Positions 2,489 to 42,849 of a DNA stretch of 64,000 nucleotides are shown here, in pieces. The position numbers and the translations under genes are program-made. Numbering within the stretch: the first letter of the stretch is position 1; every line of letters starts with the position of its first letter. This stretch comes from Mobula birostris (Eukaryota). Where the stretch lies: the NCBI RefSeq assembly GCF_030028105.1, contig NC_092384.1:42911553-42975552 (forward strand), in the 5' to 3' direction. A model generated the notes under the pieces. The model had not been told where the DNA came from and did no database searches. It worked only from the letters and a program-made list of their open reading frames with translations.

Positions 2489-5400
2489 GTAAGGTTTATG
2501 TAGCATAAGGTTCCCCTGGAGACTTGTGGCCCCAATCCAATACAAACATTTTGTATTTCTTAGCCATGAAGCTGATAGGAATTACATTTTTTTCTGTAGA
2601 ATTTTACAAACCAACTATTCTTTTTTAACCAATTAATGATTTGTTGTCAATCAAAAAACTATAGATGCTGGTAATCTGAAAAAAGACACAAAATGATGGA
2701 AACTCAGGTAGCATCTGTGAGGAGAAAAAGAATAGACATTTGTCAAGGCTGATAAACTGACATGTTTTAAAACTTATTTCATTTTGCACTTTCATCTTTT
2801 TAATATAGCTACATTGGATTTGGAAGTCAGCCCAACAGTGTTGGATGCCACAATTGGTGAAGGAGTCCTATTAAGTTGCTTATTTTCTCACACCAGTAAA
2901 CTTGACTTGAGCTACATTGTGATCGAGTGGAATCAGAGAACAGGAGATAATGAGAAGGCTATTTGCCTGTTTGAGTTTGGAGAATATGAAATCTATAGAC
3001 CTGGATCAAGTCTCTCTTTAAGCGAAATAAGCAAAGGAAATGCATCATTACTCCTAAAAAATGTTACTATTAATGACATTGGATCATACTCCTGTACAGT
3101 TACAATATTTTCTCATAAAAAAGTGGGGAGAGTTACTTTGTCGATTTCAGGTGAGTACAGAGATAATACCTGAAATCTGTCAAAACTGTGTTAGCTGAAA
3201 ACTGGAAATGTTAATGATGATAAAAATTACCACACGTGTTTGGTGACTAACATTAGAAAATACACCCACATGCCAAAGAAATTCAGTGTTCATCTGCATA
3301 ATGGTGATGATTTGAAATCCATTGTTAGTTTTAAACATGAGACTGATTATTAAGAGTAGAAAAAGTGTTAAGAATAATTGAAGCAAAACCCAAAGAAGGT
3401 CAATATCCAAAATATAAACAAGTGTCATAAAGTCATAGAAAAGTACATCTAGTCTGTGCCAAACCATTTAAGCTGCCCACTTTCATCAACCTGCGCCGGG
3501 ACCATAACCCTCCATGCCACTACTATCCATGTACCTATGCAAACTTCTCTTAAATGTTGAAATCAAACTTACATGCACCACCTGTGCTGTCCACTCATTC
3601 CACACACTCACAACCCTCTGAGTAAAGAAGTTTCCCCTCATGTTCCTGTTAAACTTTTCACCTTTTACACTTAACTCATGACATCTGGTTATAGTCCCAC
3701 CCAATCTCAGTGGAAAAAGCCTGCTTGCATTTACACTATCTATACCCCTCATAATTTTGTGTACCTCTATCAAATCTCCTCTCAATCTTCTGCATTGCAA
3801 GGCAGAAAGTCCAGACCGATTCAATCATTCCTTGCTGGAGGCATTGAGTAGGTCAGATAATAACAGTGGTAAGAGAAAAAAGAGTGAGCATTTCAGGGCA
3901 ATGTCTCTTCATTAGAAAAATTCTAAGAAGGGTGAGCTGGGCAAAGCTGGACAGATGGCCATTGAACAAACAAGATTTCATTGAACAGCACACATAATCT
4001 GGAAAATGGGAGGAGTGGGGAGGGCATGCAACTTGCTCCATTGCAAAGCACCATGAACATGTTATATTCGAAGTGATACCAAATGAGAAAGCTTATGAAG
4101 GTACTACTAGTACTATTACGTCGACTCAGGCCTAGGGGGCCAGCGTCGGGCACGATGATGGACTCTCCACTTCTCCCTCCCCCACATCAGTGTGTTCAGT
4201 TCATCTACATTAGCCGCGCCGCTGCCTTCTAGGATCGTGTTGACCATATTCTTGGGAGGGCACCCAGGGTTCATCCTACCGTGCTTGGGCTCCCATATGA
4301 TGACTAGCCTGGCAGGTAGCTCGGGGTGGCGTAGACAGTGTCCCCTAGTTGCAGTCTTCTCACCTCGATTTTAGTGGAGAGCACCAGTGGGTTGTTATAG
4401 AGCTCAAAGTTTGTTATGTGCTGTTGCCAATTCACATCAAGAGACATCCGGATCATTCGTGTATAGCAACCATCCAGAGACTTGTGCATCGTCTTGGTGA
4501 GTGTCCACATCTCGTATCCGTACGTGAGAATGGACTCTATGACTGCTATGAAAATCTATGAAAATGCTATGAAGCTAATGCAATATATATCCTGCTTCTT
4601 TTATTATTGTAGCACCTCCTGCAGTCTGGGTAAACACTGTAAGTATTACAATTGAACCTGGTGAAGATAAAGCAATTATTTGTGAGATGCAGAACTTTTA
4701 CCCAAAGAACCACTCTGTCACTTGGTTAAAAAGTGGCTCGAAAGGCAATGGAAACCAGGTCGATATCACATCCCAAGCAGTTTCTGGAACACCTCAGCAA
4801 AATCAAGATGGGACATTTAATCTGATTTCATTCCTAATCATCAAAGGAAACCAGTCAGATGATGGATCTTTTTATATCTGCCAAGTGGATCATGAAGCTT
4901 TAAAATCACCAGTGCAAAAAGCCATTAGTTTGACCATAAAGGGTGAGTTATAATAAATGAGGTTGGTATCATTTCTCTTACGCCCTGTTTATTCTTATTT
5001 AGGGAACCTTGGTTAGAATTTTGTGTAACTGAGCCACAAGAGAAAGGCATCACTGTAAGAAGCAATCATCATCCAGTCTCTTGCCTAATGGTACATCAGT
5101 TCCTTAAAATTAGTCTGACTTGTTAACACTGTTACATTGTTTGCTGTGTTTCATTTAAAATAAGTTTTTTGTCATTTATTTGCAATATGTACACAAAATA
5201 TTTCAATAGAAAAACTGCCAACCTTTGAACTCACCTTATCAGAAATATATACAGCAATAAAATAGTTTTATAGCTGCATTTCACTGACTATTTATACAAT
5301 ATCTGAATCATGCGGTTTCTAAATTATTTTTTGCAGTTTCATTGTCAAATTATGCAAGAAGAGAGTCATTTGACATGAACATCCGACAGTTTTCAAAATT

Positions 5401-8400
5401 ATACTCAGTAAATACTTAATTAAATCAAAAAAATTTTGATCAATTAGTTCTCTGACCTAATGTGAAGGAGCCTCTGAACCAAACTACATGTGGGATATTA
5501 ATGTAACGTGGATATATTCTCCCACAGAGGGATGCATTGCCTTTATTTTTCAAATGAGGTACTATATTAAAGTGTGGTTTGTTTTCCAGGAATACCATGA
5601 CACCATTTTAAAAAAGAGCTCAATGTCTCGATGACATGGTCAATGTTTGTCCTTCCCCAAGATCTTCCACCAGTACCAAAACCCCTTTTCTGCTCATTAT
5701 CATACTCAAAATGCTGGAGCAGCGGTTCCCAAACTTTTTTAGTGCCGTGGGCCGATGCCATTAAGCAGTGGGTCCATGAACACCAGGTTGAGAACCCCTG
5801 TTCTAGAGTAACTCTTCCAGTTGCTCTGGATTTCCAGCATCTGCAGAATCCTTTGTGCTGCTCATTGTCTTTTGCTGTTTGAAGGAGCTTGCTGTGTTGA
5901 AATTGACAGGCTTGCTTCCTGCATCAAAAGATTTCAGTTCGAATGTATTTCATTGGTTGCTAAGTGCTTTGGAATGTTCTGACAATGACACAAAAATATC
6001 ATACAAATGAAATTCTTCATTTCTTTTGGAGAGTTTAGGTGAACGTTGCTAGAACCAGGGCTCGGGGAAACTCAAATTTGCACAGGAATACTGCTGCAAT
6101 CGATACTCATCCACTTGCTCTGCATAAATATGAAATCAATAGAATTCCCAGGCCCCAGAGCTTTATTGCCAAGCCAACATAGCTGAAAAATTATCAACAT
6201 CATACCTTTGGCATCTACGTTGATCAATTATTGGATCAATATTTGATATTGATAATATGATTTAGTTCTGAATCACTTGTATCTTTAAGTTTCCTCCCTA
6301 AGCTTTGTCAATAATGAGACCATAAGACATAGAAGCAGAGTTAGGCCATATGGCCCATTGAGTCTGCTTCACCCTTCAACCATGGCTGATTCTTTTTTCC
6401 CCTCCTCAACGCCATTCCTGCCCTTCTCCCTGTAACCTTTGATGCCATGTCCAGTCAAGAAACTATCAATCTCTGCCTTAAATACACCCAATGCCTGGCC
6501 TCCACAGCTCTATGTGGTAACAAATTCCACAAATCCACCACTCTCTAGCTAAAGAAATTTCTCCACATCTCTATTTTAAACAGACGCACCTCTATCCCAA
6601 GGCTGTGCCCTCTTGTCTAGACTCCCCCACCATGGGAAACATCCTTTCCACATCTACTCTGTCTAGGCCTGTCAACATTTGAAATGTTTCAATGAGGTCC
6701 CCCCCCCCCACCCCACAACTTTCTGAATTCCAGCAAGTACAGACCCAGAGACATCAAACGTTCCTTGTATGATAATCCTTTCAAGTTGGGAATCATCCTT
6801 GTGAACCTCCTCTGAACCCTCTCCAATGCCAGCACATCTTTTCTTAGATGAGGAGCCCAAAGCTGTCCGCAATACTCAAGGTGAGGCCTCACCAGTGCCT
6901 CATAAAACCTCAGCATCACATCCCTGCTCTTGTATTCTAGACCTCTTGAAATGAATGCTAACATTGCATTTACCTTCCTCACCACCGGTTCAACCTGCAA
7001 GTTAATCTTTAGGATGTTCTGCACAAGAGCTCCCAAGTCCCTTTGCATCTCAGATTTTTGGATTTTCTCCCCATTTAGAAAATAGTCTGCACGTTTATTT
7101 CGATTACCAAAGTGCATGACCATGCACTTTCCAACATTGTATTTCATTTGCCATTTTCTTGCCCATTCTCCTAATCTCAGTCCTCATGCAGTTTACCTGT
7201 TTCCTCAACACTACCTGCCCTTCCACCATTCTTTGTATCATTTGCAAACTTGGCAGCAATCCATCTATTCCACCATCTAAATCATTAATATAGAGCATAA
7301 AAAGAAAAGGTCCCAACACCAACCCTTGTGGAACACCACAAGTCACTGGCAGCCAATCAGACAAGGATCCTCTTATTCCTACTCACTGCCTCCTACCAAT
7401 CAGCCAATGCTCTAACCATGTCAGTAACTTTCCTGTAATACCATGGGCCCCTAACTTGATAAGCAGCCTGATGTATGACACCTTGTCAGAGGGTTCTGAG
7501 AGTCCAAATATACAACATCCACTGCATCCCCTTTATCTATCCTACTTGTAATCTCAAAGAAATCCAACAGGTTTGTCAGGCAAGATTTTCCCTGAAGGAA
7601 GCCATGCTGACTTTGTCCTATCTGGTCCTGGGTCACCAACTACACGTAATGCATATGTGCAAGTTTGAAATGTGTTGAATCAGACAATAGAAATGTCAAA
7701 ATAGTCGTGAGTAGATTGCCATTAATCTCCTAGTCAAAATGTGAAGCATTACTTTTGGAAGAGTATAGTTTCCAGCATTAGATACTTTAAGTCTCAGTTT
7801 TTTCAACTATTATTAAACTATATTTGGAATATAGTTTGGATCGACTATATTGATATAACATACATCTCTTTCGAGTCACCCCATAGCACATTTACAGCCA
7901 ATGACATGTTTTCTAAAATACTGCTGTTGTTGCATTGGAAATGGTGTTTTGTACTGCGCTGCAACAAAGTTTAAAATTCTGCTCTGTGATTGCAAGTAGC
8001 AGTCAGCTCAAAGAAACTATAACAAATAATCAATAACAAATGCTTGGCTTTTTGTCTTCATAGGACCCAAATTAACTAGCAGATCAAGAGTATTACTCAC
8101 AATTGTTTTGACATTTCTGATCACAGCAATGTCATCTGTCTGTTTTGGAACTTGCCTTTTCTACAATAAAAGTATAGGTAAGTAATAGAACTCTTAAAAC
8201 TTATTTTTGGGATGAGGTTGCGTTTACCAGGGCAGTATTTACTTACCCTTAATTTTCCCAAGAAGGTGATGATGTCCTATCTCTTCGAGTAATTGGGGTT
8301 TGTGTGATGGTAGTGATGGTGATGTTGCCTCAGTGTGTTTGAATAAAATACTTCAGTGATACTAAGCTTCTGACAGTGATCCTTTCCTTTTGTCCCTGGT

Positions 8401-11400
8401 GCTTTATTGTACTGTAATAATTTTTTCAGTTGCACAATATTTAACTAAGCATAGCTGTCTGACCAGATTTGCATACTCAATGTGTTTTAGTGTTCAGTCC
8501 ATCTATGACCTTGACTGCTTTTGAAAAAAAAGTAACTTCACTGCGATTGTTAAAAGCAGCAAATGCTGGAACTATCCAGCAGGTCAGTCCACATCGGTGG
8601 GAGGAGAAACAGAGCGAACGTTTCACATCCAAGGGTTTTTGACATGAAGCATTGATTCTGTTTCTCTCCCCACGTATGCAGCCTGGCCTCCTGAGTATTC
8701 CCTGCATTTTCTGCTTTCAGTTAAGCTCGCCAGTATCTGCATCTTTTATATATATATATATATATATCTATTTGAACTGAAATTGATCATTGTCCGTCAA
8801 TCAGATTAGTAAAGGAGCATTCCTTAAAAAAATAAAGCAAGAGGATCAGCAAAGTAAATGAGTGAGAAACGGTCTGGAAGGTTAGATCACATGAGATCCA
8901 AGGTGAGATAGCCAATTGGATGAGAATATTGGCAGCATGGTTAATAAGTTAGCATATCTAAGATTGCAGTGAATTCTAGATTAACTGAGCCGGTGTGCGG
9001 ACAAATGACAGATGGGTAAATGTGAAGTCTTCCATTTGGGAAAGACAAGCAAGCGCAGCAAAGTAAATGGTAGGGTCCTAGTGATTGCTGTAGACTGGAG
9101 ACCCGGGGTGCAGGTGCATGGTTCCGTGGAACGGGCAACACACACAGACATATACTTAGGAAGGCATCAGGATATTGAATACAACAATTGAGAACATCAT
9201 GTTACAGTTGTACAAAATGTTAGTTAGGCCACATTTAGAGTACTTCATGCAGACCTGGTTGTCCAACTGTAGGAAGAACATCATTCAGTTGAAAAGGATA
9301 CAAAAAAGATTCAAGAGGATGTTAATAGAACTGGAGGGTTTGAGTTATAATGAGGGGCTGGATAGGCTAGCCTATTGTCCCATGGAGCATTAGAGGCTGA
9401 ATGGTGGCCTGACGGAGAACAATAAAATCAAGAGGTGAAAAGCCACCATCTTTTTTCCAGAATAGGGCAGTTCAAAATGAGAGGACCTAGGCTTAAAGTG
9501 AATGGAAAAAAAAAATAAAAGGGGCCTAAGGGACAATGATTTCCCGCAGAAGATGGTCCTGTATGGATCCTGCTGCCAGAGGTATGTAGAGTGGTGTACA
9601 GCCACAATGGTTAAAAGGCATTTCAGCAGGTACATGGAAAGGAAAGAGTTAGAGGGCTATGAACCTAAGGGACACCTCAGTCTGACATGATCCAGTTGGG
9701 CTGAAGGGCCTGTATTCCATGCTGTATAGTTATATGACTCTGACTCTACAAGTAGCAGAGCCTTTTTTTTAGTAAAGAACAACAAATCGATTATGTTTCT
9801 CTTTGATTTTCAGTTACTCCCAGGGTGACAAATATTGTTAAATCAAACCACTGGAACACCAACGCTCCACTTTCTCTTGCCTGTGCAGTTTACTGGTTCG
9901 GACCAAAACCAATCGTTGTGTCTTGGTACAGGGAGGAGGTGGGTAAATTCCAAAGAGTCCTCATTGGTAAATGGGACAACACTTCACACTGTGCAAAAAG
10001 GAAGTCAAAAGGGTATTTTCAGAATGAACAAGAAGATAAAGCAATGTTGTTCCACAAAGGAGAATGTGATATTGCTGTGACTTGGAAAAGCCACGAAAGT
10101 AGTGGAATGTACAGTTTAATATCTCAACTCACCTTCAGATGTGCAAGAGCTGCGGAAGGAAAGCAGGCGTACAATTTTTCTGTCCAGCATGGCTCACTGA
10201 AGCAAAACATTTTAAGATCCGTTATCGTAGAAATGGAAGGTGAGTTGCTGTTATTTTATTGCAGAATAGGCCAAAATAAAATTTGAAATATTTTAAACTA
10301 AACTAAAATAGACATTGATAAGAAATAGAAACCCTTTGGAACTCTTTGTTCTGTACAATCTATAGCCGCCAGCAGTCTATTCCACACACTCACCATTCTC
10401 TACGTAAAAAAATCTTATCCCTGACATCTCCTCTGTACCTATTCCCCAGCACCTTAATACTATGCCCTCTCATGCTAGCCATTTAAGTCCTGGGAAAAAG
10501 CCTCTGACTATCCACACAATCAATGCCTCTCATCATCTTATACACCCCTATCAGGTCATCTCTCATCCTCCATCACTCCAAGGAGAAAAGGCCGAGTTCA
10601 CTCAACCTATTCTTATAAGGCATGCTCCCCAATCCAGGCAACGTCCTTGTAAATCTCCTCTGTACCCTTTCTATGATTTCCACATCCTTCCTGTAGTGAG
10701 GCGACCAGAATTGAGCAGAGTACTCCAAGTGGGATCTGACCAGGTCCTACATAGCTGCAACATTACCTCCCAGCTCTTAAACTCAATCCCATGATTGATA
10801 AAGGCTAATGCACCGTATGCTGCCTTAACCACAGAGTCAACCTGCGTAGCAGCTTTGAGTGTCCTATGGACTCGGACCCGAAGATCCCTCTGATACTCCA
10901 CACTGCCAAGAGTCTTACCATTAATGCTATATTCTGCCATCATATTTGACCTACCGAAATGAACCACCTCACACTTATCTGGGTTGAACTCCATCTGCCA
11001 CTCCTCAGCCCAGTTTTGCATCCTATCAACGTCCCGCTATAACCTCTGACAGCCCTCCACACTATCCACAACACCCCCAACCTTTGTGTCATCAGCAAAC
11101 TTACTAACCATCCTTCCACTTCCTCATCCAGGTCATTTATAAAAATCACGAAGAGTAAGGGTCCCAGAACAGATCCCTGAGGCACAGCACTGGTCACCGA
11201 CCTCCATGCAGAATATGACCCGTCTACAAACGCTCTTTGCCTTTTGTGGGCAATCCAGTTCTGGATCCACAAAGCAATGTCCCCTTGGATCCCATGTCTC
11301 CTTACTTTCTCAATAACCCTTGAATGGCATATATGTTAAGATTTCATTTTGTAATATTTTCTGGTATATCACATAGTATATGCCACTAGTGGAAAGAGTG

Positions 11401-14400
11401 AATTCAAGTTAAAAAAAGGGTCTCTCACCTGAAATGTTTCTCTGTCCACAGAGGTGGGGTGACCTGCTGAGTATATTTTTTGTTTTAGATTTCCAGCAGA
11501 TTTTGTTTTTTTAATTTTTCTCCACCACAGGAATTTATCTAGTCAAACTTTTTTTGATCTCTCACTTAAGTAAGGGTCCCACACCACCAGGTTCAGAACA
11601 ATTATTGCTCTTCAACCATCAGGCTGCTGAAACAGCGTGGATAATTTCACTCACCTCAACACTGAACTGATTCCACAACTTATGGATTCACTTTCAATGA
11701 CTCTACAACTCATGGTCTCAGTATTATTTATTTACTTGTCTATTCATTCTTTATTTGTTTATTTTAAATGTGCACAGTTTTGTCTTCTTTAACACATTGG
11801 TTGTTTGTGAGTCTTATTTGTGTGCAGTTTTTCACTGATTCTATTGTATTTCTTTGTTCTACTGTGAGTGACTGAAAGAAAATTAATCCCATGGTAGTGT
11901 ACGATGACAAAAGCATACTTTGATAATAAGTTCACTTTGAAATTTGAAGTAAGGGTATCACTTGGGAAGGAAGATGTTCAATGCAGTCTCACTCACTGCA
12001 GTCTCAGACAATCTTCTGTAATAGGAGACATTATTCCACTTGGTATTCAGCTGCACTGGCAAGTTAACATTATATAAATCATGCACAAGACCACCTAGGT
12101 CCACCTAAAATTCCAGTGTTCTCACTCCCTGCCCATTTAAGAAAATTGTGCTTTTCTATTTTTACTATTGAACTGGATAACCCTACTTGCCCCACAGATC
12201 CCTTTAAATCTTTCTCTTCACACCTTAAATCTACGTCCCCTAGTGTTAGACACCCCTACAAGAGGAAAAGGACTGTGATCCTCAACCTTATCTATGCTCC
12301 TCGTGATCTTATAAATCTCTATAGGGTCACCCCTCAGCTTCCTACGCTTCAGGGAAAACAGTCCCAACCTACCTGGTCTCTCCTTATAACTCAAGTCCTC
12401 CTTGTTAAGCTTCTCTGCACCTTCACTAGCTTAATCTCATTCTACCTACACCATGGCAATCACAATATTCCACACACACTCTCACCATCATCCTATATAG
12501 ATAGAGATAGATAGATACTCTATTGATCCCAAAGGAAATTACAGTGACACAGTAGCATTACAAGTTTATAGATAAACAAATATACAAACATTAGAAGAGA
12601 AATAAGAAAGAATAAAAAAATAAGACTCTCAGATAAAGGAGCAGAAGTAGGCCATTCGGCCTATAGAGTTTACTCCGCTATTTGATCATGGGCTGATCCA
12701 ATTCTTCCAGACATCCCCCCTCCTCTACCTTCTCTCCCATACCCTTTGATGCCCTGGCTAATCAAGAACCTATCTATCTCTGCCTTAAATACACCCAATG
12801 ATTTGGCCTCCACAGTCACTCATGGCAACAAATTCCATAGATTTACCATTCTCTGACTAAAGTAATTTCTTCACATCTCTGTTCTAAATGAATATCCTTC
12901 AATCCTGAAGTCATGCCCTCTTGCCCTAGACTTCCCTACCATGGGAAATAACTTTCCAACATTGTATTTCATTTGCCACTTCCTTGCCCATTCCCCTAAA
13001 CTATCTAAATCTCTCTGTAGGCTCTCTGTTCCCTCAACACTACCCACTCCTCCACCTATCTTTGTATCATCGGCAAATTTAGCCAGAAATCCATTAATCC
13101 CATAGTCCAAATCATTGACATACATCATAAAAATCAGCAGTCCCAACACCAACCCCTATAGAACTCCACTAGTAACCGGCAGCCAGCCAGAATAGGATCC
13201 ACCCACGCTAGTAACTTCCCTGTAATTCCATGGGCTCTTATTTTACTAAGCAGCCTCATGGGTGGCATCTTGTCAAAGGCCTTCTGAAAATCCAAGTTCA
13301 CCACATCCACTGCATCTCCTTTGTCTACCCTGCTTGTAATTTCCTCAAAGAATAGAGTAGGTTAGTCAGGCAGGGTTTTCCTTTCAGGAAACCATACTGG
13401 CTTTGGCCTATCTTGTCATGTGCCTCCAGGTATTCCATTATCTCATCCCTAACAATCGATTCCAACAACTTCCCAACCACTGATGTCAGGCTAACAGGTC
13501 TATAGTTTCCTTTCTACTGCCTCCCACCCTTCTTAAATAGCGGAGTAACATTTGCAATTTTCCAGTCATCCAGTACAATGCCAGAATCTATCGACTCTTG
13601 AAAGTTCATCGTTAATGCCTCTGCAATCTCTGCAGCTACTTCCTTCAGTACCCAAGGGCGCATTGCATCAGGCCCAGGAGATTTATCCACCCTCAGACCA
13701 TTAAGCTTCCTGAGCACCTTCTCGTAACTTTCACTGCACATAAATTACCTCAAACAGTCCAACAGGGGGGGATCATTACTTTCTCAGTTATAGTTTGACT
13801 CATTATAGAGCCTAATGGCCGAGGGTAAGAATGACCTCATATAGCGTTCTTTGGAGCAGCGCAGTTGTCTTAGTCTATTACTAAAAGTGCTCCTCCGTCC
13901 AACCAAGGTGGCATGCAGAGGGTGAGAAACATTGTCTAGAATTGCCTGGATCTTCCACAGGGTCTTTTGTTCTACCACAGTCTCTAGTGTGTCCAGTTTG
14001 ACTCTTATAACAGAGCCAGCCTTTCCAATCAGTTTACTGAGTCTGTTAATTCCATTGCCCCAGCACACCACTGGATAGAAGATTGTACTGGTGACAACAG
14101 ACTGTTACAACATGTGAAGGAGAGGCTTGCATACTCCAAAGGACCTCATACCTCAGGAAGTAGAGGCAACTCTGGTCCTTCTTGTACACAGCCTCTGTGT
14201 CGGTGCTCCAATCAAGTCTGTCATCCAGGTGCATCCCCAGATACTTGTAGGCCCTCACCACAACCATGACCTCACCATCAATAATACCAGGGAGCAGTGC
14301 AGGCTTAGTCATCCGAAAGTCCATCACCGTCTCCTTTGTCTTACGAATGTTCAGCTGCAGATGATTCAGCTTGCACCATTAGACAAAGTCCTCCTCCAGG

Positions 14401-17400: not shown

Positions 17401-20400
17401 TGAATATACTCAAGGTCAAACTACAAATTCTCATGTTTGTTATATGCAATATTTCTGAGGTTTACTAAATTCCCCTGAGAGAATCACACAGAGATTTTGG
17501 ATTTATTTATCTAACCCTGTGAGGCAGTTGATCAAAGAGCGGCCCTTTTGCTTCAGGGTCAGGTCGTCTTGGAATCAAGTCTTGTTCCAGAGCTGAGCAC
17601 CAAAATCGACCAATACGTTTGAGAGCAGTGCTGAAAGGGTGCTGCTGTGTGAGGAAAAACTGCCATCCGTTCTTTCAGGTGGACCTGATAGGGCGGCACG
17701 GTAGCATAGTGTTTAGCACAACGCTTTACAGTAGCAGCGACTCACATCCAATTCCTGTCGCTGCACGATCTCCCCATGACTACGTGGGTTTCCACAGGGT
17801 GCTCTGGTTTCCTCCCACGGTCCAAAGATGTACTGGTTAGTAGGTTAATTGGTCATTGTAAATTGTCTTGTGATTAGGCTAAGGTTATATTGGGGGTTGC
17901 TGGGCAGTGTGGCTCGGAAGACCCCATTCCGCACTGTGACTCCAAATAAATAAATAAATTATATATTTCATATTATTAAATCAAAGAGAAGTGGGGGAAT
18001 TTCCTTGGATGTACTGGCTAATATTTGGTATGTCCTAATCAGCATAAATAATGCCAGATAATTTGCTTTTAATTATGGGGATTTATTGTGTGCAAATTGG
18101 CTGTGATGTTTCTTCCAGTAATGACATCCATTTTAAGTACTGGCTATTTGCACTATTTGTAACGTGCACCTCAAATCATCAAAACATACTGTGAAATGTG
18201 TCATTTTCATCAGTGCCAACTCAGCCCATGGATTGTGCTGGGGTGATCCCACTAATGTCACCACACTTCTGGTGCCACGATAACATGCCCACAACTCACC
18301 AGCCCTAACCATATATCTTCGCAATGAGGGAGGAGATCGGAGCGCCCAGGTAAGCCCAGACCATCACAGAGCGAACATACAATCTCCTTACAGACAGTGG
18401 CAGGAATCAAACTCTAATCGGTGATCACTGGCGCTGTACAATGATTGTTCTAACCCCTATGCTACCGTGCACCAAGGTTTAAAGTTCAAAGTACACTTAA
18501 TATCAAAGTATGTATACATTATACAACCTTGAGATTTGTCTCCTTTCAGGCTGCCACAAAACAACCCATAAAAAAAGACCATCAAACAGCCGGTGTGCAG
18601 AGAAAAATCGAATCACGCAAACTAATAAGAGTAAACAGAAAGTATTCACAGCGCAAGTGAGTCCACAGACACAGACCCAGAGCATCCGTAGCAGGCGCAG
18701 TTCATCGCAGAGCTGTGTAACCATCGCGGAACAGCCAGCAGAATCGGCCTTACCATCTCCTCTGGTCCCGACACCCTGCCTTTTCAATCTGGCCTGGCGT
18801 TTAACTCATCCAAACATTGCTGCAGCACCCAGACCCTGTCACTTCGATACACTCCAGGCCTGGACCCCGCCACCACATTTTGGCCTGTACCTGACCTTTC
18901 CAAACTGGCCTGGCGCTTAGATCAATTAAACCACAGGTCTTCCCTGGCTCTCGGTTTAGGTGGACAGGCCTTGATTTTTCCTCATTTCCGCTCGCCCTGA
19001 CTTTGCCTCACCTCCGCTTGCTTCGAATCTGCCTCAACCTCACTTCTACTTGCTTCGACACTCGACTCTTCCTCACCTCCACCCACCTCTCTGTTGTTTG
19101 TACTGATCGTTTACCATAAATGTTATGAGAAGGAGTGTTGTCAATAAAGCATTTGGTTGTATTTCCTGATGAAGGGTCTCAGCCCGGAATGCCGACTGTA
19201 CTCTTTTCCATAGGTGCTGCCTGACCTGTTGGGTTCCTCCAGCATTTTGTAGGTGTTGTTTGGATTTCCAGCATCTGCACGCTTTCTCTTGTCTGTAGTT
19301 GTGTTTTTTGTTTTGTTTGCCACCAACAAGTAGTCGCTGGGCCTCACCAGCGACTTCTTAAACTGGAAATTATAGAGTGCTGTATAAGTTACATTTCTTC
19401 AATACTTTTATGTTCTTAAATAACATTCCTCATAGGTGTTGATGACGATATTGAATATTTTCCAACACAAATGAAGCGCAAAGACTGGGCACTGCAGGCT
19501 ATTGAAGAAGGGCGCCGCACTATAGTTAATTACATCAGTCCAAACATCCATCCACTCCTAGATATTTTAAAAGAGAAGAAAATAATCTCTGAGAATGATC
19601 AGAGTGATATAAAAGCTAAGCTAGACATCGATAAAGGCCGGACTCTCCTGGACATAATGAGCCACAGAGGGCAGTGGGCTTGTGTTCAATTTTTCAATGT
19701 CGTACAGAATACTGATGATCTTTATCCTGGCATCAGAAAGTACCTAACATCACTTTTGGAATCCTACACTGAGAAAGATGACAGACCTGCTTTTGATCTC
19801 CTCTGTGAAGGCAGACCAACGAGTTTATTTCAGATCAACAACGAAAAATCCGAAATAATCAATATTCCTGAAGGTAAGTGTGCTTACATATTTAGAATTA
19901 ATGGACATTTCTGTATTTAACAATAATGAATCATGAAAAGCTTGAACCCATCTCTTTGCAAATTCCATAATAATATATCAAAGTACTGTGACACAGATAT
20001 GCTCTGTCACAGTACTTTGATATATAGCTGGTTGAGGTGAGTACTTGAAGGCTTGAAGCCCTCACACATTAAAAAAAGATGAAAATTATTCCTCCATGGG
20101 ACTATTCAGTTAAAAGGCCTCCAAACATAGCCCTCAACCTAAGGACATAATTTCTCTTGAAGTATTCTGTTCTCCATTTTGAATTTAGTTCATCATGTAG
20201 GCAAAGTCATCTAGTCACCATCTACAATCTTCCAGCCACCTCCACGGTCAATGGTACATGTACATTAGGTAGTTTTGTCAAATCCCCGGCTCCAAGCAAA
20301 GCACTTTTACAGTTTTATTCAGTTTAAATAACATTCCTCAGGAATTTCTGGATTGGATTAGCTGGAAGTTGTGTAGTTGTTCAATATAATTTGATAAGAA

Positions 20401-23400
20401 ATGTGTATTTGTGCAAAGTGCTTCTGAATGAATAGGCTCATTGAGTAAAGGACCTCTCTCACATTCCCTTACAATGTCCCAGGTTTATCTGCACATACTT
20501 CACACAGTGAATAATTCATGTGCCATTGTTGCCTCACTTTTATTGAATATAAAGGTGTTTTGTAGAACAATTTTACACCAGATTTTTGCAGAATTTATAC
20601 CTAAAATGTACCCAAGATTGTATTCTAGCAACAATTAGATTTTTATTTTTTCCTTAGTATTCCTGTGAATTTAGGAGAAGTTAATTGTTTTTCAAATAGA
20701 GCTACACCTTAACAATATGTGATACCAAGAATCCAATTTGTGAATTGAGTTTACTGATAGGCTCTGCCTACCATATTTGTGGAAAGGAGTATATTACTGT
20801 TTGAACAATATTGTTGTCTACCTTCACATCATTCTAGAAGTAGTATTTAAACTCTATTGAACATGTTTTGTATTGTCTTACTTATGTGTAATAGAGCTTC
20901 TAGTACTTATATTCCAATGATCTACCTTCTGTATAAGACTTCATTCTTGCAAGGCATCACCTCACAGCAAATGTTATCCCATCATTACAGTTACAATGTT
21001 CATTGTAAATCAACCTCACAGATATGAAAGGTTTGATTTAATTTCAAACATAAGAGATCCTGCAAATACTAAAAATCCAGAGTAACGCACAAAATGCTAG
21101 AGGAACTCAGCAGGTCAGGCATCATCTATGAACAAAAATGAAGAGTCAACATTCAGCCAAAGACCCTTGAAAGGTCCTGGTGCCCTGTTGAAAGGTTTTG
21201 GCCCGAAACATCATCTCTTTATTCCATTGCATAGATGCTGCCTGACTTGCTGAATTCCTCCAGCATTTTTCATGTGTTACTTTAGTTTAATTTTTATGAT
21301 TTGTGTTCTAGTATGTGCCCATTTTATTACTGTATCTTATACATTATGTTTTATTACTCACTTTGGATGTCGCATTCATTCTAATGTTCTGTCTTTTGTA
21401 ATTATAGAAATCCTTAAAGCAACTGATAATCACAAGAGCATATTGAGAGCTCAGATGGAGAGAATAAAACCATACTTTGGATTTGATAACTCTAGTCCAT
21501 TACTGCAGGAGCATTTTACCAGCCTGGTCATTCTCAATGTCCAAGAAAGGAACAAAACTGAACATGAGCTGCTCCAGCACAGAGACTATACAGCCTGCGA
21601 GTATACAGATTTGCAGCAGCTTCTTTCCCCATCTGCACCAGGGAAGCCATCACCACGAATCACACTCGTGCAGGGAGTGGCAGGTATAGGAAAAAGCATT
21701 ATGATGCAGAAGCTTGCCTACAGTTGGGCATGTGGAACAGGTTACACTGGATTTTATATGTTGCTGTATTTCAGTTTCCGGGAGTTAAACACAATCACTG
21801 AGAAAATCAGTCTGACCGAGCTTATTATACGTAGTTATCCTCATTTGACTATATTATGCAAAAAACTCCTGCAATTTCCAGCTGGAATTCTATTTTTGTT
21901 TGATGGATTGGATGAATTCAAATGGCCTCTTGATTTTAGTGTTCATTCACTTGATAACCCATCCGTTTCTGAACGCATTAACCACTTGATTGTAAGCATC
22001 ATCAAGGGAGATCTCCTGCGTGACTCAACTGTTCTTATCACATCCCGCCCAACCTCAATTGATTTAGACCACAAAACCTATTTTAATCGGTGTGCTGAAA
22101 TTTTAGGGTTTTCCAGGAATGAAATTGCAAAATACTTTGAGAAGTGCCTCAAGAATAAAACATTTGCTGATCATGTCTTCCAGACTGTGAAGAACATTGA
22201 CTCCTTGTATGGGCTCTGTTACGTCCCTGCGTTTTGTGACATTTTGTGCTTCTATCTCCGTAAATCATTTCACTCTAAAGGCAAATGGTCCAATCTGTCT
22301 TCATTTCCCAAAACGATCACAGATTTATTCCTTCGTTTCACCAAGTGTTTACTTGTCTGTACCAGTGGTGAGGAAGAAGACCCTGAGTCCTTCTGCATAG
22401 AAGCTGATGAAGACAAGAATGAAATTATTAACTTGGCACAACTTGCATGGGATGGAGTCATCAATAAAACAATAATATTTTCATCTAAAGACGTTGAAAA
22501 AAACATCTCTCAAAAGGCCAGAGTAATAAAATCCTTCTGGAAAAAAATCCTCACTAAAGAGAGCCTACAAATGATGCATTCTCATATTTGGCAATTTTTC
22601 CATCTGACTCATCAAGAGTTTTTTGCAGCACTCTATTGTATTTCTGGTGTGGATCATGTGCACAAGGCCTTCAGCTCAAAGGGCAGCACTTTTGAGATTG
22701 TGCTGAGGTTCACTGCTGGCTTGGTCTCTCGCAGCAACAGAAAACTTGTCCAACAGTTGGTGCCTGAACACCAGGTCAAAGAAAGGGAAGTCTTTGCAGC
22801 TATTGAAAATGCTGCTGCTGTTGACATTCCAAAAGAAGACAAGCTAACTCCTGAAAATATCAAAAAATATACAGCACACAAAAGACAAAAACTAACAGCC
22901 TCTCATTGTCTGTATGAAGCAGCAAATGAAGATCTAACAAAATCAGTTGCTTCCCAAACAAGTGACTGTGTGAATTTTTCTTACATCACTTTGAATGTGA
23001 CTGACTGCACTGTGATTGCAAACCTCCTTTCCCATCACACAACTATTGAAACACTCGAACTGGATGGGTGCAAAGCTGGAGCTGCTGGTTTCCAAAGACT
23101 GAAGTCTATTTTTTCCAGAATCAAAACACTGAGGTAGTGAAATAGAACATAGAAATCTACAGCACATTGCAGGCCCTTCGGCCCACAATGATGTGCCGAC
23201 CACGTAACCAACTCTAGAAACTGCCTAGAATTTCCCTAGCGCATAGCCCTCTATTTTTCTAAGCTCCATGTACCTATCTAAGAAACTATTAAAAGATCCT
23301 ATTGTATCCGCTTCTATCGCCACCGCCGGCAGTGCATTCCACACACCCACAAGTCTCTGTGTGAAAAACTTACCTCTGACATTCCCTTGGTACCTATTTC

Positions 23401-26400
23401 CAAGCACCTTAAAACTATGCCCTCTCATGTTAGCCATTTAAGCCCTGGGAAAAAGCCTCTTGCTATCCACACGATCAATGCCCCTCATCATCTTATACAC
23501 ATCTATCAGGTCACCTCTCATCCTTCGTGGCTCAAAGGAGAAAAGGCCAAGTTCACTCAACCTATTCTCATAAGGTACGCCCTCCAATCCAGGAAGCATC
23601 CTTGTAAATCTCCTCTGCACTCTCCCTATGTTATCTACATCCTTCTCGTAGTGAGGTGACCAGAACTGAACACAGTACTCCAAGTGGGATCTGACTAAGG
23701 TCTTGTATAGCTATAATGTTACTTCTCGGCTCTTGAACTCAATCACACGGTTGATGAATGCCAACACACCATAAGCCTTCTTAACAACAATGTCAGCCTG
23801 CACAGCAGCTTTGAGTGTCCTTTCAACACAGACCCCAAGATCTCTCAGATCCTCCGCACTGCCAAGAGTCTTACCATTAATACTATATTCTGTCTTCAAA
23901 TTTGACCTACCAAAATGAACCACCTCACACTTATCTAGGTTGAAGTCCATTTGTCACTTCTTTGCCCAGTTCTGCATCCTATCGATATTTCATTGTAACC
24001 TCTGACAACCCTCCAGACTATCCACAACACCCCAACCTTTGTGTCATCAACACACTATCTAACCCACCCCTCCACTGCTTCATCCAGGTCATTTATAAAA
24101 ATCACAAAGAAGAGGGATCCCAGAACAGATCCCTGCAGAACACCAACCTCCATGCAGAATACGAACCATCTACAACCACCCTTTGCCTTCTGTGGGCAAG
24201 CCAATTCTGGATCCCAAAAAAAGGTCTCCTTGGATGCCATGCCTCCTTACATTCTGAAGGAGCCTTGCATGGGGAACCTTTATCAAATGCCTTACTGAAA
24301 TCCATATACACTACATCCACTGCTCTACCTTCATCAATGTGCTTTGTTACATCCTTAAAGAATTAAATCAGGCTCGCAAGGCACAACCTGCCCTTGACAA
24401 AGCCATGATGACTATCCCTAATCAGATTATGTCTCTCCAAATGCTCATAAATCCTGCCTCTCAGGATCTTCTTTAACAACTTGCCCACCACTGAAATCAG
24501 ACTGACTGGTCTATAATTTCCTGGATTATCTCTACTCCCTTTCTTGAACAAGGGAAAAACATTTGCTATCCTCCAATCCTTCAGTACTTCTCCCATCCCT
24601 ATTGACGACGCAAAGATCACCTCCAGAGGCTCAGCAATCTCCTCCCTTGCTTCCCACAGTAGCCTGGAGTATACTTCATCCGGTCCCGGTGACTTATCTA
24701 ACTTAATGTTTTTCAAAAGCTCCAGCACATCCTCTTTCTTAATATCTGTATGCTCAAGCGTTTCAGTCATCCCCACAATTGCCAAGGTCTTTTTCCCTGG
24801 TGAATACTGAAGCAAAGTATTCAATAGGTACCTCTGCTACCTCCTTCGACTCCGTGCACATGTTTCCACTATCACTCCTGATTGGTCCTATTCCCACATG
24901 GCTCATCCTCCTGCTCTTCACATACTTGCAGAATGCCTTGGGGTTTTCCTTAATCCTGTTCACCAAGGTCTTTTCATGTACCCTTCTAGCTCTCCTAATT
25001 TCATTCTTAAGCTCCTTCCTAGCAACCTTGGAATTTTCTGGAGCTGTAACAGTACCTAGTTTCTTGAACATTTTGTAAGCTTTTATTTTCTTAACTGGAT
25101 TTTCTACATACATTGTATACCATGGTTCTTTAACTCTACCATCCTTTCCCTGCCTCAATGGAACATACCTATGCAGAACTCCATGCAAATGTTCCCTGAA
25201 CATTTGCCACATTTCTGCCATGCATTTCCCTGAGAACATCTGCTCCCAAGTTCCTGCCTAATAGCATCATATTTCCCCCAACCCAATTAAATATTTCCCC
25301 AAATTGTCTGTTCCTATCCATCTCTAGCGCTATGATGAAGGAGATAAGTTGTGGTCACTACCTCCAAACTGCTCTCCCACTGAGAGATCTGACACCTGAC
25401 CAGGTTCATTTCCCAATGCCAGATCAATTACAGCCTCTCCTCTAGGTGGTTTATCTAGATATTGCATCAGGAAATCTTCCTGAACACACCTTACAAACCA
25501 CCCCATCCAAATCCCTTGCGCCAAGGAGATGCCAATCAATATTAGGAAAGTTAAAATCACCCAGTGAGGTTGGTTGCTCATCCTGATATGCCTAGATGAT
25601 TCCATTTCTCCTATAGACAATTCTTAAATAATGTCAGTGACCCAGCTTCAACCACTCTCTCAGGCTCTGCTTTCCAGGTACTTACCAGTCCTTGGGTGAA
25701 GGCAGTCCCTTCATATCCCCTCCAAAACCTTTCTCCCATACCCTAAATCTTCTATGTCCTAAAAACCCTCATATACCTTATGCCCCTAGTTATAAAAATT
25801 ACCCTATCTACACTCTTCAGAATTTAAATAAAAACTCAACCAAATCTCCTTTTATCCTCTTCTGCTCCAGGAAGATGAATAGTGAGCAAGAAGAAATAAT
25901 TTATGATCTTTAGTTTATGGGAAAATACTAGCAAACATCAATAGCATGATTATAACTCAGTAAATGAATAATTCATTGCTTGAAAAATGCAGATACAAAG
26001 AGAGCAAAAGATTATTATTGCAGCACACACCAAATGCTGGAGGAACTCAGCAGGCCAGGAAGCATTGTGGAAAAGAGTCAATAGTCGACATTTCAGGCCG
26101 AGACCCTTCATCAGGGCAAAAGATAATTATTGCTTTGTTTTTACAGTTTAGAGGGAAACATGCTAGAAGATGAAGGAGCAGAGATTATTGCTGATGCTCT
26201 CAGAAAAGAAACATGTAGAATAGAAACCTTAAGGTAAAACTTCCAATTCTTTACACATTTATGCACAATATTGAGAAGTATTGTTTTATTTGAAGTTGTA
26301 CACTAGTAACATTAAGGTTAAGCAAGAAGTTTCAGAAGTATAAATTCAATTAATGTAGAATGAAAACCAATAGGGTTAAAGTTTCTCAGCTTCATTCTAA

Positions 26401-29400
26401 CAAGGTCACTCGTGCATTGTCTCAAGGCTGTGGCCTCGTAAACATGGATTTAAAATCCTTTACTTTATATATCTTAGAAACCTGAAAAGGCACAATTTAT
26501 TCACTCTGACCAGTTGGCATCCTTTTGTGTTAACCCCATCACCCAGCTCTTGGTTCAGAGCTCCTCTGTGCCTAGGTGATGCAAGACATCCAGACGTTCA
26601 TTGGGACATTTCTTAGATGCTCTCAGCAAACCAGCTTTAACCACTTCCGGTGCATTTCAGGCACTTTACCATCTCTTCCCTTTACCCTCAACCTGCATTA
26701 TCTAGTTTATCTTCTCTGATATGGAGAGAAGTTTTCTGCAGTCTACCTTACCCGTTTCTCATTTAATTATATGCATTTTAGTCACGTCTCCTCTTAACCT
26801 TCTCTGCTCCATGACAGGGATCATCCTGGTGAATCTCCTTTACAATTAATTCTCTAAATCTATCTGGTAATTAATTCTGAGCTATATAACGTATAAATTG
26901 TGTACACATATTGTATGTTACTGTCATGAACTCTTAGGACCAGCGCATGGCATCGGAGGACATCAAGCCTCAGTGCTCCAATGCGCCCAAGCATCAGTGA
27001 TTTGTTTTAACTAAAACTTGTTGAGTAATTGGTTTAATCATTAAGTTTTCCTTGTGCTTTCATGCCACTTATTTTTTTGAATGTGGGTTCCTCGTACATC
27101 CTGTTTTTAGTTTGTTGTGTTTTAATTTTGATATGCACGGGATTTCCGTGCTATATGCATTATTTAGGTTAGTCATGAATAGCGTTCATCACTGAGTCCT
27201 GAAGTTGGAGTAGGAATGAACTAACATTCTGAGTCATTTATTATTCCTCTGTTACATTCTTCAAATAAATCCTCATCATTACTTTCTACCTCTGAGTCTT
27301 GAGTTTACTCTGCGCCTGGCTCGTTTGCCTGAAGAAATCATTACAGCAGGTCTCGGGCATCATGGATCCAGCAGGGTTTGATCAATTGGTAACTCGGTTA
27401 TTGGAATTTTTGCAGGTTGAAGCACAACTCCATAGGGGAGAAAGGAGCAGCACAAATTGCAGAGGCTTTGAAAACAAACAGCAGCCTGAAGGTATTGGGG
27501 TATGTATTGAACCTACTGGATTCAACACTTGACAACCTCTGGATCGTTTGTAAGGAACAACGTTCTATTCAATGTATCAGAACACTTCAAAGCACTTAAC
27601 TTCACTAATGAGCAAAAACCTTAAACTGAAACACAAAGGGAGAGATTATGTAGAATCTTAATCAGAAAGGTGAATTTTACAGTGCAATTTTTAAAGTGGG
27701 AAAGGGTAAGAGAAGTGGAGAAGAAGGAATTCCTGGAGAGGAATTTAAGTACAACACCATAGAAGAATTGAGAGAGCTTTACAAGTAACTTCACTGAGAG
27801 AGCCACTGTACAGAGGCAGAAGTAAGCATTTTGAACAATAGACCGTACATTGGTATAGTATATATTTTGTCATCTAATACGTCAAGTCTGATTTAACTTC
27901 ATATGTTTGCAAGGGAGGGACATGGGGATGATGATAAAAGAAGAGAATTTGTAGTAGGACCAGAAACAAATGCTTCTCAATATTAAATTACAGAAAGTGT
28001 GTTTCTTTCAATACTGATATCAAACAAGCAGTATGACTTAGAAACCAGGAAGGTATATGCTGTCATTATGGATATGGAATAAGTTACTGGGTTTCAAATA
28101 CTGTTGGTTAGGAGCAGTTGTAGATGGGGAATAGAAGGGACCAGTACAGGTTGTTGGAGAGCATCATAATAACAGCGAAAGCCCAAAAGAGAAGCTATTG
28201 CTGCTGATGTTGTGACCATGACTGGTAGAGTGATATCTGAAACCAATAATCTAAGTCCCACCCATCAGAACAATGAAAAGATACTGGACAATGATGTAAC
28301 TAACTGTACTAAAGGCTGTAATTTGGTAGAATAAGATGAAGACAAAATTACCTTTGTTATCAAGCAACACACATAAAAATTGCTGGTGAACGCAGCAGGC
28401 CAGGCAGCATCTATAGGAAGAGGTACATTTGACGTTTTGGGCCAAGACCCTTCGTCAGGACTAACTGAAAGAAGAGATAGTAAGAGATTTGAAAGTGGGA
28501 GGGGGAGGTGGAGATCCGAAATGATAGGAGAAGACAGGAGGGGGAGGGATGGAGCCAAGAGCTGGAAAGTTGATTGGCAAAAGGGATATGAGAGGATCAT
28601 GGGACAGGAGGCCAAGGAGAAAGAAAGGAGGAGGGGGGGAACCCAAAGGATGGGCAAGGAGTATAGTGAGAGGGACAGAGGGAGAAAAAGGAGAGAGAAA
28701 AAGAAATATATATATAATAATAATAAATAAATAACGGATGGGGTACGAAGGGGAGGTGGGGCATTAATGGAAGTCAGAGAAGTCAATGTTCATGCCATCA
28801 GGTTGGAGGCTACCCAGACGGAATATAAGGTGTTGTTCCTCCAACCTGAGTGTGGCTTCATCTTTACAGTAGAGGAGGCCGTGGATAGACATATCAGAAT
28901 GGGAATGGGACGTGGAATTAAAATGTGTGGCCACTGGGAGATCCTGTTTTCTTTGGCGGACAGAGCGTAGGTGTTCCATCTGGGTAGCCTCCAACCTGAT
29001 GGCATGAACATTGACTTCTCTAACTTCCGTTAATGCCCCACTTCCCCTTCGTACCCATCCATCCATTATTTATTTATTTATTGATTTATTCATTCATTCA
29101 TTCATTCATTCATTCACTCTCCTTTTTCTCCCTCTGTCCCTCTCACTATACCCCTTGCCCATCCTCTGGGCTTCTCCCCTCCCCCTTGTCTTTCTCCATA
29201 GGCCTCCTGTCCCATGATCCTCTCATATCCCTTTTGCCTATCACCTGTCCAGCTCTTGGCTCCATCCCTCCCCCTCCTGTCTTCTCCTATCATTTTGGAT
29301 CCCCCCCTCCCCCTCCCACTTTCAAATCTCTTCCTAGCTCTTCCTTCAGTTAGTCCTGACGAAGGGTCTCGGCCCGAAACGTCCACTGTACCTCTTCCTA

Positions 29401-38427: not shown

Positions 38428-38934
38428 CTCAGTGGCTACATTATAAAGTACACCTGCTCATTATTGCAAATATCTAATAAGCTGGCAGCAACTCAAAGCA
38501 GAAAAACGTACAGACGTGGTCAAGAGATTCAGTTGTTTTTCAGATCAAACATCAGAATGGGAAAGAAATGTGATCTAAGCGACTGTCACCGTGAAATGAT
38601 TGTTGGTGCCAGACGGGTGGTTTGAGTATCTCAGAAACTGCTGATCTCCTGGGATTTCCACACACAACAGTCTCTAGAGTTTACAAAGAATGACGTGTAA
38701 ATCAAAAAACATTCAGTGAGCAGCTGTTCTGTGGGTGAAAATACTTCGTTAATGAGAGAGGTCAGAGGAGAATGGCCAGACTAGTTCAGGCTGACAGTAA
38801 GGCGACAGTAACTCAAATACTCATGTGTTAAAACAGTGGTGTGCAAAAGAGTATCTCTGAGTGTACAACATGTCAAACCTGGAAGCGGATGGGCGACTGC
38901 AACAGAAGACCATGACCGGGAAGTAGCCACTGAG
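38428..38934 (+). mobile_element. Internally deleted Tc1/mariner element
   Basis: TA-flanked ends: TATACTCAGTGGCTAC (38424-38439) and exact reverse complement GTAGCCACTGAGTATA (38923-38938). The interior is a decayed Tc1 N-terminus (MGKKCDLS..ETADLLGF..VSRVY). Confidence 0.88.
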
Positions 38935-41749: not shown

Positions 41750-42530
41750 GGCCACCGATACCATCTGGGGGGAATAATTCTTATAGTGATTTTTGGCAAG
41801 GTATCACCCCTAATGCTAGAAAATGTGTTATAGCATTGCAGCGGTGGTCGCTTGCATAGTAACCTCCATGCTATAAGAACCATGATCCCAGGTGCTTTGC
41901 CAGTGATAAGATGAATTATGCCAGGTACCTGTCCCCTTACTTTGCTCAGATGATGAACCTCCCAGAGAAGAATCCTTCTGTGTACGAGGCCTTCAAGACA
42001 GGCCAATTCTCAGTGCAGCTGTCAAGTAACAACCCCTTTGGGCAGATCCCTGTGGACCAGGCTATTGAAGCCACAGTGAACAAAGACATGCAGACTCCTG
42101 GAGGCACATCACAGTTCAGCCTGAATGCTGGAGCTATCAAGCATTACGGCATAACAGCTGAGCACTTCAGTGCATTCCTGGGACAGTTAAGGGAGATGGT
42201 GCAAGGCAACAAATCAGAGCTTTGTCATGCGGAGCTACAGCGGCCAGGAATCCAGAAAGATGAGGAAGCAATTTCAGCAGTGGTTACCCTCATACATGAA
42301 TGGGTCAACCCATTTTCAGAGAAGCGGGACCTCATTAGCATCTCTACGGCAAAGGCAGCCTCCAAGGACATTGCCTCCGACCTGATGAAGGCATATGAGA
42401 TTGGTGATCAATGCGACACAACCTTCAGGGCTGAGAGACTAGAGGAAGACCCGCCAGCAAAGAAATGCCATGACCCAATGAAAACCAACAAGCTGAAAAC
42501 ATTCAGTGATATGTGTAAGAAGAGAGAAGA
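41750..42530 (+). mobile_element. DNA-transposon transposase fragment (tentatively Academ-like)
   Basis: NYARYL..Y..QM..L, G.FSVQ...NPFG.IPVDQ.IE.T.NKD.QTPGG, W.NPF, KLKTFS pattern recalled from large eukaryotic transposases. Upstream part is frameshifted. Superfamily not verified. Confidence 0.45.
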
Positions 42531-42849
42531 GGTATTTCTTTTTTTCTCTGTAAATGCTGCAGGTGGTATATGGAAATATTTACATACTTTGATAATAAAT
42601 GTATTTTGAAATGTAAAGCAAAGCATTAGTGTCATAGTCACTGTATTTTCTGATCCATATCCTTTACAAAATAACATAAAATTGAAGCCATCTTCATACA
42701 GTTACATGTCAGTCACAAGAGTATCACTGTGCTGAATTCAGCTATAATCCTAGACATCTGTGATACAAGTCAAGGGAGTCACAGTTATTTTAATATCACA
42801 GAGGGAAAATCACATGAGGGAAAATTTGGAACAAGTGGATTCAGTTACC

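Follow-up and report, generated by a model that had tools for sequence, protein, structure and literature searches.

The 64,000-nt stretch of Mobula birostris DNA analyzed here (NCBI RefSeq assembly GCF_030028105.1, contig NC_092384.1, positions 42,911,553 to 42,975,552; hereafter the window) carries on its forward strand exons for immunoglobulin (Ig) domains together with exons of a NOD-like receptor (NLR). This raises the question of whether a 114-nt segment at positions 8064-8177, lying between two exons for C1-type Ig domains, is a coding exon, and whether it converts the product into a membrane protein. An earlier note, made from the sequence, had described it as a hidden transmembrane (TM) exon. 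The segment is confirmed as a genuine, expressed and conserved internal coding exon. It is coding exon 4 of a single-copy, annotated gene and very probably encodes the sole helix with which the protein spans the membrane; the product would be a type I anchored NLR with a B7-family ectodomain. The core of the earlier reading is thereby supported by spliced contigs, a RefSeq protein and conservation in orthologues.

Exon 8064-8177 (forward strand) is preceded by a pyrimidine-rich tract and the AG at 8062-8063 and followed by the donor gtaagt (8178-8183). It has one open frame only, in which two leading bases finish a codon and one trailing base is left over, so that both flanking introns are of phase 1. 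Upstream, the IgC1 exon (4613-4942) has a phase-1 end at G/GTGAGT; the downstream C1-like exon, designated C1' (9814-10239), is preceded by ttttcag and is in phase 1 at both ends. The AG and GT boundaries are canonical, and the frame of the exon is compatible with both neighbors. Pyrimidine tract, donor, phase and peptide are thus all in the sequence as the earlier note had described them. The segment is also absent, as stated there, from the list of open reading frames (ORFs) of at least 50 aa in the 64-kb window, because its open stretch comprises only about 38 codons.

Chance occurrence was controlled for on both strands of the window by combining a pyrimidine tract with AG, a GTAAGT or GTGAGT donor, a length of 90-150 nt in multiples of three, an open phase-1/1 frame and a mean Kyte-Doolittle hydropathy over 19 residues (KD19) of at least 2.0. 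Exon 8064-8177 was the sole candidate on either strand. When any GT donor was allowed, about six more loci appeared on the forward strand and one more on the reverse strand. The requirement for a strong donor leaves one candidate, so that the combination is distinctive, although sequence alone is no proof.

The gene is represented in RefSeq by XP_072135758.1, a 1319-aa Mobula birostris protein automatically named 'NOD1-like'. The 12 spliced exons of the window translate to residues 27-1319 of this protein at 100%, stop codon included, and the translation of 8064-8177 matches residues 250-287 at 100%. The exon was therefore 'hidden' only with respect to the ORF list, being already part of the public annotation. 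The order of the protein is predicted signal peptide, IgV, IgC1, TM helix, disulfide-less C1-like domain (C1'), CARD, NACHT and LRR. Protein residues 250-288, encoded by exon 4, comprise a short stalk followed by the single TM helix and the beginning of the cytosolic part. The NACHT domain carries the Walker A motif GVAGIGKS and is followed by LRRs, the domain content of an NLR; with its signal peptide-like leader and TM segment, XP_072135758.1 does not qualify as a soluble cytosolic NLR.

Expression of the exon was found in sequencing runs detected by exon words. These contained all sampled words of 8064-8177 and only 10-17% of the 5.9-kb stretch 4500-10400, which is about the share made up by its three exons. 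Four runs from two ray species (X1 and X3 from organism A, X6 and X8 from organism B) were aligned as contigs to this stretch. Single contigs align to 4611-4941, 8063-8175 and 9812-10242, the three pieces being contiguous in each contig; the offsets of 1-2 nt are due to alignment ambiguity at AG/G junctions, and the joins are equivalent to 4942 with 8064 and 8177 with 9814. The contigs of organism A (X1, 4517 nt, depth 67; X3, 4602 nt) show no differences from the window. Those of organism B (X8, 3523 nt; X6, 658 nt) differ from it by about 2.6% and carry T>A at 8135 (Ser>Thr), the residue found in the Mobula hypostoma protein. Since the C1' exon has one genomic match only, a retrocopy is not the source of the intron-less contigs, and their exact GT..AG boundaries together with this single locus indicate spliced RNA. 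Both junctions that the earlier note had proposed for checking were joined in contigs of the four runs and two ray species, and exon 8064-8177 is included in every transcript contig examined.

The earlier note had further pointed out that omission of the exon would preserve the frame, and this arithmetic is correct (114 nt, phase 1/1). Phase 1 is the starting phase of every exon from V to NACHT, which makes any skip frame-preserving, and 8064-8177 could be a regulated cassette whose omission, alone or with C1, gives a relevant non-anchored isoform. In Mustelus asterias, Gnomon isoform X5 joins V straight to C1', lacking both C1 and TM. In-frame skipping has also been modelled for this gene in the CARD-less isoforms of Narcine (X4) and Pristiophorus (X2); as the CARD exon is symmetric and is skipped in these annotated isoforms, CARD-less forms may exist. 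A regulated cassette at 8064-8177 nevertheless appears improbable. No joint of 4942 with 9814 is among the contig joints listed for the four runs, in which rare forms are lost, and none of 38 annotated orthologue or isoform sequences lacks the TM segment alone, Mustelus asterias X5 being the sole TM-less model among them. Moreover, a TM-less form would keep the signal peptide and put CARD-NACHT-LRR into the lumen of the endoplasmic reticulum (ER), where the signalling partners of NLRs would be absent.

The analysis of exon 8064-8177 was extended to other species by protein searches. A full-library search with the C1' exon returned one strong match, a 1168-aa protein of Narcine bancroftii with V-set, C1-set, NACHT and LRR domains, in which C1' corresponds to residues 283-423. 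A search with this protein revealed orthologues in 12 shark and ray species. Full-length orthologues (1289-1346 aa) contain V-set, C1-set, CARD, NACHT and LRR_6 domains according to Pfam, gene models from at least 17 elasmobranch species, both sharks and rays, share one ORF without interruption, and the gene spans about 35-44 kb in three orthologues. The nurse-shark orthologue (GenBank QTT61908.1, 1318 aa) is a laboratory deposition under the name 'B7H6'. Automatic names of the other orthologues vary, including NLRC3-like and NOD1-like. The basking shark Cetorhinus maximus protein XP_078400485.1 (1317 aa), with the same architecture, appears in RefSeq as 'pleckstrin homology domain-containing family F member 1 isoform X1', a name that is probably artefactual.

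A segment of 36-39 residues separates the K-G junction from the beginning of C1' in 37 of the 38 sequences (orthologues or isoforms), which cover at least 17 species. Its maximum KD19 ranges from 1.85 to 2.63, its sum on the Hessa scale is below zero in 36 of 37 sequences, and its length varies by whole codons only. At least 17 shark and ray species thus have orthologues that keep the TM segment, and the conservation check suggested by the earlier note came out in favor of the exon. Conservation was judged at the protein level, with 18 sequences in the per-column alignment. Mean identity to the manta protein is lowest of all exons in the TM exon (57%, vs. 83% for NACHT and 85% for LRR), as expected for an anchor selected on hydrophobicity. 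Residues K249, G250, S257, T266, T270, C276 and T279 are invariant (18/18), while R256 is kept in 16 and L260, T262 and F282 in 17 sequences each.

The helix core, V259-Y283 (8090-8164, forward strand), is a 25-residue hydrophobic run containing conserved small polar residues, four of them invariant (T266, T270, C276 and T279) and one, T262, nearly so. The Thr and Cys positions are spaced i+4, i+4, i+4 and i+3 (T-x3-T-x3-T-x3-C-x2-T). Helical periodicity of conservation at 100 degrees was not significant in the TM segment (permutation p = 0.28). A 6-nt insertion at 8132-8137 (forward strand), encoding Ser-Ser or Ser-Thr, occurs in the two Mobula sequences only and in none of the other 16; it disrupts the register of the Thr/Cys pattern.

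Residues 259-277 have a KD19 of 2.36, the maximum of the protein, followed by the leader (residues 12-30, 2.16), all other segments reaching at most 1.61; they form one hydrophobic segment of at least 19 residues capable of crossing the bilayer. With the TM segment as the strongest hydrophobic segment and the predicted signal peptide as the second, type I topology is the natural reading, with V and C1 predicted outside and C1'-CARD-NACHT-LRR predicted in the cytosol. The cysteine pairs of V (C49/C121) and C1 (C163/C229) are present, as are the sequons N103, N110, N172 and N219 on the ectodomain side, in agreement with the four sequons and intact Cys pairs of the earlier note. Its use of the sequons as support for topology is weak: the cytosolic part contains 16 more, many of them conserved since the N-x-S/T pattern is part of LRR motifs, and eight are kept in 80% or more of the species. 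Sequon counts, 4 on the ectodomain side vs. 16 on the cytosolic side, were accordingly rejected as topology evidence.

Several points weigh against a type I anchored receptor expressed in this form. Its orientation was derived from hydropathy scales (Kyte-Doolittle, Hessa) and sequence features. Positive charges are more numerous on the ectodomain-side flank of the ray TM segment (K, R, R) than on its cytosolic flank, a weak conflict with the positive-inside rule, with which the shark sequences agree better. The AlphaFold2 model of residues 1-432 places a helix at 259-273 with low confidence (mean predicted local distance difference test, pLDDT, 50) and serves for secondary structure only. At the RNA level, the label of the runs as RNA is a guess, their nature being deduced from the intron-less contigs; contigs cannot reveal minor isoforms or inclusion levels; and the presence of the CARD exon in the manta contigs is suggested by contig-length bookkeeping.

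The basic N-terminal flank of the ray TM segment would also fit a hydrophobic segment that is not a stop-transfer anchor, for instance a reversed signal anchor or a buried linker behind a non-functional leader. The hydrophobic core of the leader holds Asp or Glu, and some annotated isoforms of other species lack leader and V, which points in the same direction. This explanation is nonetheless very improbable. The leader has a basic n-region, an 11-residue hydrophobic core and a small-residue cleavage motif in all species aligned. The disulfide cysteines of V and C1 are kept and the sequons N103 and N110 are invariant, while the C1' disulfide is lost, and the ectodomain is most closely related to B7 proteins of the cell surface. 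It is well established that CARD, NACHT and LRR domains are not known from compartments other than the cytosol. Type I anchoring therefore remains the preferred reading. Of the earlier claim that the exon fixes the topology, its presence in spliced RNA and its conserved hydrophobic segment with the top KD19 of the protein stand; the orientation itself is a prediction.

The two cysteines at the inner end of the helix, regarded in the earlier note as palmitoylation candidates, are both present in manta and differ in their conservation. Cys276 (8141-8143, forward strand), in the cytosolic third of the helix, is invariant in all 18 sequences and is a candidate S-acylation site. Cys280 (8153-8155, forward strand) occurs in rays only (6 of 18 sequences) and is replaced by Phe in most sharks.

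The C1' domain, encoded by a 426-nt exon (9814-10239, forward strand, phase 1/1) and predicted on the cytosolic side of the TM helix, keeps the B-strand Cys. Phe takes the place of the F-strand Cys in 17 of 18 sequences; the remaining one ends before this column. Loss of the second Ig cysteine fits a reducing, that is cytosolic, compartment. The predicted structure of C1' is an Ig sandwich (pLDDT 71, predicted template-modelling score 0.71), and a sandwich of this kind without disulfide likewise fits a cytosolic location. Structural neighbors of the model are the C domains of TAPBPR, MHC class II beta-2 and B7-H6. Comparison with Protein Data Bank (PDB) sequences gave weak matches to antibody constant domains (about 1e-3), with no subfamily assigned, and outside the elasmobranch cluster nothing better than 2.6e-16 was found among 1.8 billion proteins at 50% clustering. 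The domain carries an insertion of about 25 residues with low model confidence (protein residues 346-370), with which an in-frame 84-nt GT..AG interval at 9939-10022 (gag/gtgggt ... ttttcag/) coincides. This interval was considered as a cryptic intron and rejected, being retained in all contigs listed.

The remaining exons complete the gene on the forward strand. Upstream of the window, 3.58 kb before its position 1, is the leader exon (L002:6421-6496), with ATG and the phase-1 donor g/gtaagt. The IgV exon (2809-3150, 342 nt, phase 1/1) is of the B7-family type (Pfam V-set, 6.5e-12), and the IgC1 exon (4613-4942, 330 nt, phase 1/1) matches Pfam C1-set at 1.4e-13. Downstream of C1', the CARD exon (19436-19873, 438 nt, phase 1/1; Pfam CARD, 9.7e-11) is followed by the exon for NACHT and the helical domains (21408-23133, 1726 nt, start phase 1, end phase 2; Pfam NACHT, 3.6e-32). 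Five LRR exons, placed by exact spliced reconstruction of XP_072135758.1, are located at 26147-26233 (87 nt), 27416-27499, 29618-29701, 30680-30763 and 32038-32121 (84 nt each), and the last coding exon at 37881-37965 ends with the stop codon TAA (37963-37965). LRR exons were located with tblastn and a loose LRR pattern; the strict LRR pattern matched nothing.

The two halves of this gene come from families that are otherwise encoded separately, and a 9-kb intron filled with repeats lies between the C1' and CARD exons. The RNA might accordingly be a read-through or conjoined transcript of a B7H6-like gene and a CARD-NACHT-LRR gene, with no functional fusion product, and a contig spanning two genes is no proof of a single transcript. 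Such an origin is extremely unlikely. The TM exon, ending in phase 1, has no stop codon, and neither the C1' nor the CARD exon, both of which start in phase 1, offers a plausible context for a start codon. One ORF covers both halves in the at least 17 elasmobranch species as well as in the 1318-aa nurse-shark entry. The contigs run on for about 3.27 kb beyond C1' at uniform contig depth; by length bookkeeping, these about 3272 nt correspond to the CARD-containing remainder of the coding sequence plus about 600 nt of 3' untranslated region (UTR).

Several transposable elements were found in and around the gene. Antisense fragments of long interspersed nuclear elements (LINEs) with reverse transcriptase lie in its introns at 987-2281, 6689-7640, 10573-11272, 12871-14327 and 33469-35705 (all reverse strand); an endonuclease ORF is present as well in the copy at 33.5-35.7 kb. 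The contigs at 5.7-7.6 kb, whose depths reach thousands, represent LINE repeats and not the gene. The start of a Tc1/mariner-like transposase is located at about 38540-38620, in the 3' UTR about 600 nt past the stop codon, and this repeat near 38.56 kb probably marks the break point of the transcript contigs. Further downstream, a 248-codon open stretch at 41863-42606 (forward strand) without Pfam match is possibly a transposon remnant. Fragmented pol ORFs similar to those of long terminal repeat (LTR) retroelements and broken by stop codons occupy 56949-60680 (reverse strand); within them, 59455-59820 matches reverse transcriptase, and the sequence at about 57.0-58.0 kb resembles integrase.

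Comparison with solved structures relates the two parts of the protein to different families. The best match of the ectodomain is human B7-H6 (6.5e-29; 4zso, 3pv6, 6yjp), followed among non-antibody proteins by B7-H3 (2e-20) and TAPBPR (1.6e-17), so that among B7 members the IgV-IgC1 part is closest to B7-H6. Turtle NCR3LG1 gave the only non-elasmobranch Ig matches in the protein search. The NLR part is most similar to rabbit NOD2 (5irl, 2e-62) and then to NLRP3 (3e-52). The CARD has a weak match to ICEBERG among PDB sequences (1.4e-5), with no subfamily assigned.

B7-H6 (NCR3LG1) is a B7-family ligand of NKp30 and, in mammals, a stress-induced self ligand for this receptor of natural killer (NK) cells. 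The ray gene shares with it the exon order leader-IgV-IgC1-TM and phase-1 introns, but encodes a cytoplasmic part of about 1030 residues (C1-like, CARD, NACHT and LRR) instead of a short tail. The most likely ancestor of exon 8064-8177 is the TM exon of a gene of B7-H6 type with the order leader-V-C1-TM, onto which the phase-1-compatible C1'-CARD-NACHT-LRR exons would have been joined.

With NOD1/NOD2-type NLRs (NLRC) the ray protein has in common the arrangement of CARD, NACHT, helical domains and ribonuclease inhibitor (RI)-type LRR, whereas its single CARD, built-in TM helix and extracellular Ig part are different. To our knowledge, canonical vertebrate NLRs have neither signal peptide nor TM segment and contact membranes only peripherally; NOD1 and NOD2 reach membranes through S-palmitoylation. 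Butyrophilins (BTN/BTNL, IgV-IgC-TM-B30.2) likewise combine a B7-family ectodomain, one TM helix and an intracellular ligand-sensing domain, and inside-out signalling is classically exemplified by BTN3A1. Their intracellular module is, however, B30.2 rather than an NLR, and the likeness is purely one of design. In sea cucumber, Ig-containing membrane NLRs have been described, AjNLRC4 (Ig-TM-NACHT) and AjNLR-new (PMC8699970, PMC13133943); unlike the ray protein, they are not B7-like and, going by the abstracts, have neither CARD nor LRR. An independent origin of the sea cucumber and ray proteins is likely.

Taken as a type I membrane-anchored NLR with a B7-family ectodomain, the product could be assembled as follows. 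The N-terminal signal peptide would direct the nascent chain into the ER, the B7-H6-like IgV-IgC1 part would be translocated, and the helix encoded by 8064-8177 would stop transfer, leaving the disulfide-less C1', CARD, NACHT and LRRs in the cytosol. This arrangement could couple the two halves in either direction or serve for membrane placement of the sensor. In the inside-out direction, NLR oligomerization on cytosolic danger would cluster the B7-H6 ectodomain for display to NKp30-family receptors of NK cells; in the outside-in direction, receptor engagement would nucleate CARD signalling in the target cell.

Both the exon and the gene model are already public, in XP_072135758.1 and QTT61908.1, under uninformative or misleading names, mostly automatic, that hide the identity of the protein. 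As an annotation fact the exon is ordinary; the gene itself is unusual. No description of a B7H6-NLR fusion or of a vertebrate transmembrane NLR was found in the literature searched, the likeliest sources lying outside its coverage, and the matched passages of the whale-shark genome paper make no mention of B7H6-NLR. We suggest only tentatively, and as less than an even chance, that elasmobranchs hard-wire an NK-cell ligand, the B7-H6 ectodomain, to a NOD2-like CARD-NACHT-LRR sensor in one polypeptide, an arrangement that may be undescribed.

The presence of exon 8064-8177 sets the cell biology of this elasmobranch protein and would shift it from a sensor of the cytosolic type to an integral membrane display of the B7-H6 type. 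If the reading is true, a vertebrate NLR would occur as an integral membrane protein, and an Ig C1-type domain would work in the cytosol, with C1' exemplifying a fold of this type kept without its disulfide on the cytosolic side. A NOD-like sensor linked to B7-H6 would provide a model for the coupling of intracellular danger sensing with NK-ligand display.

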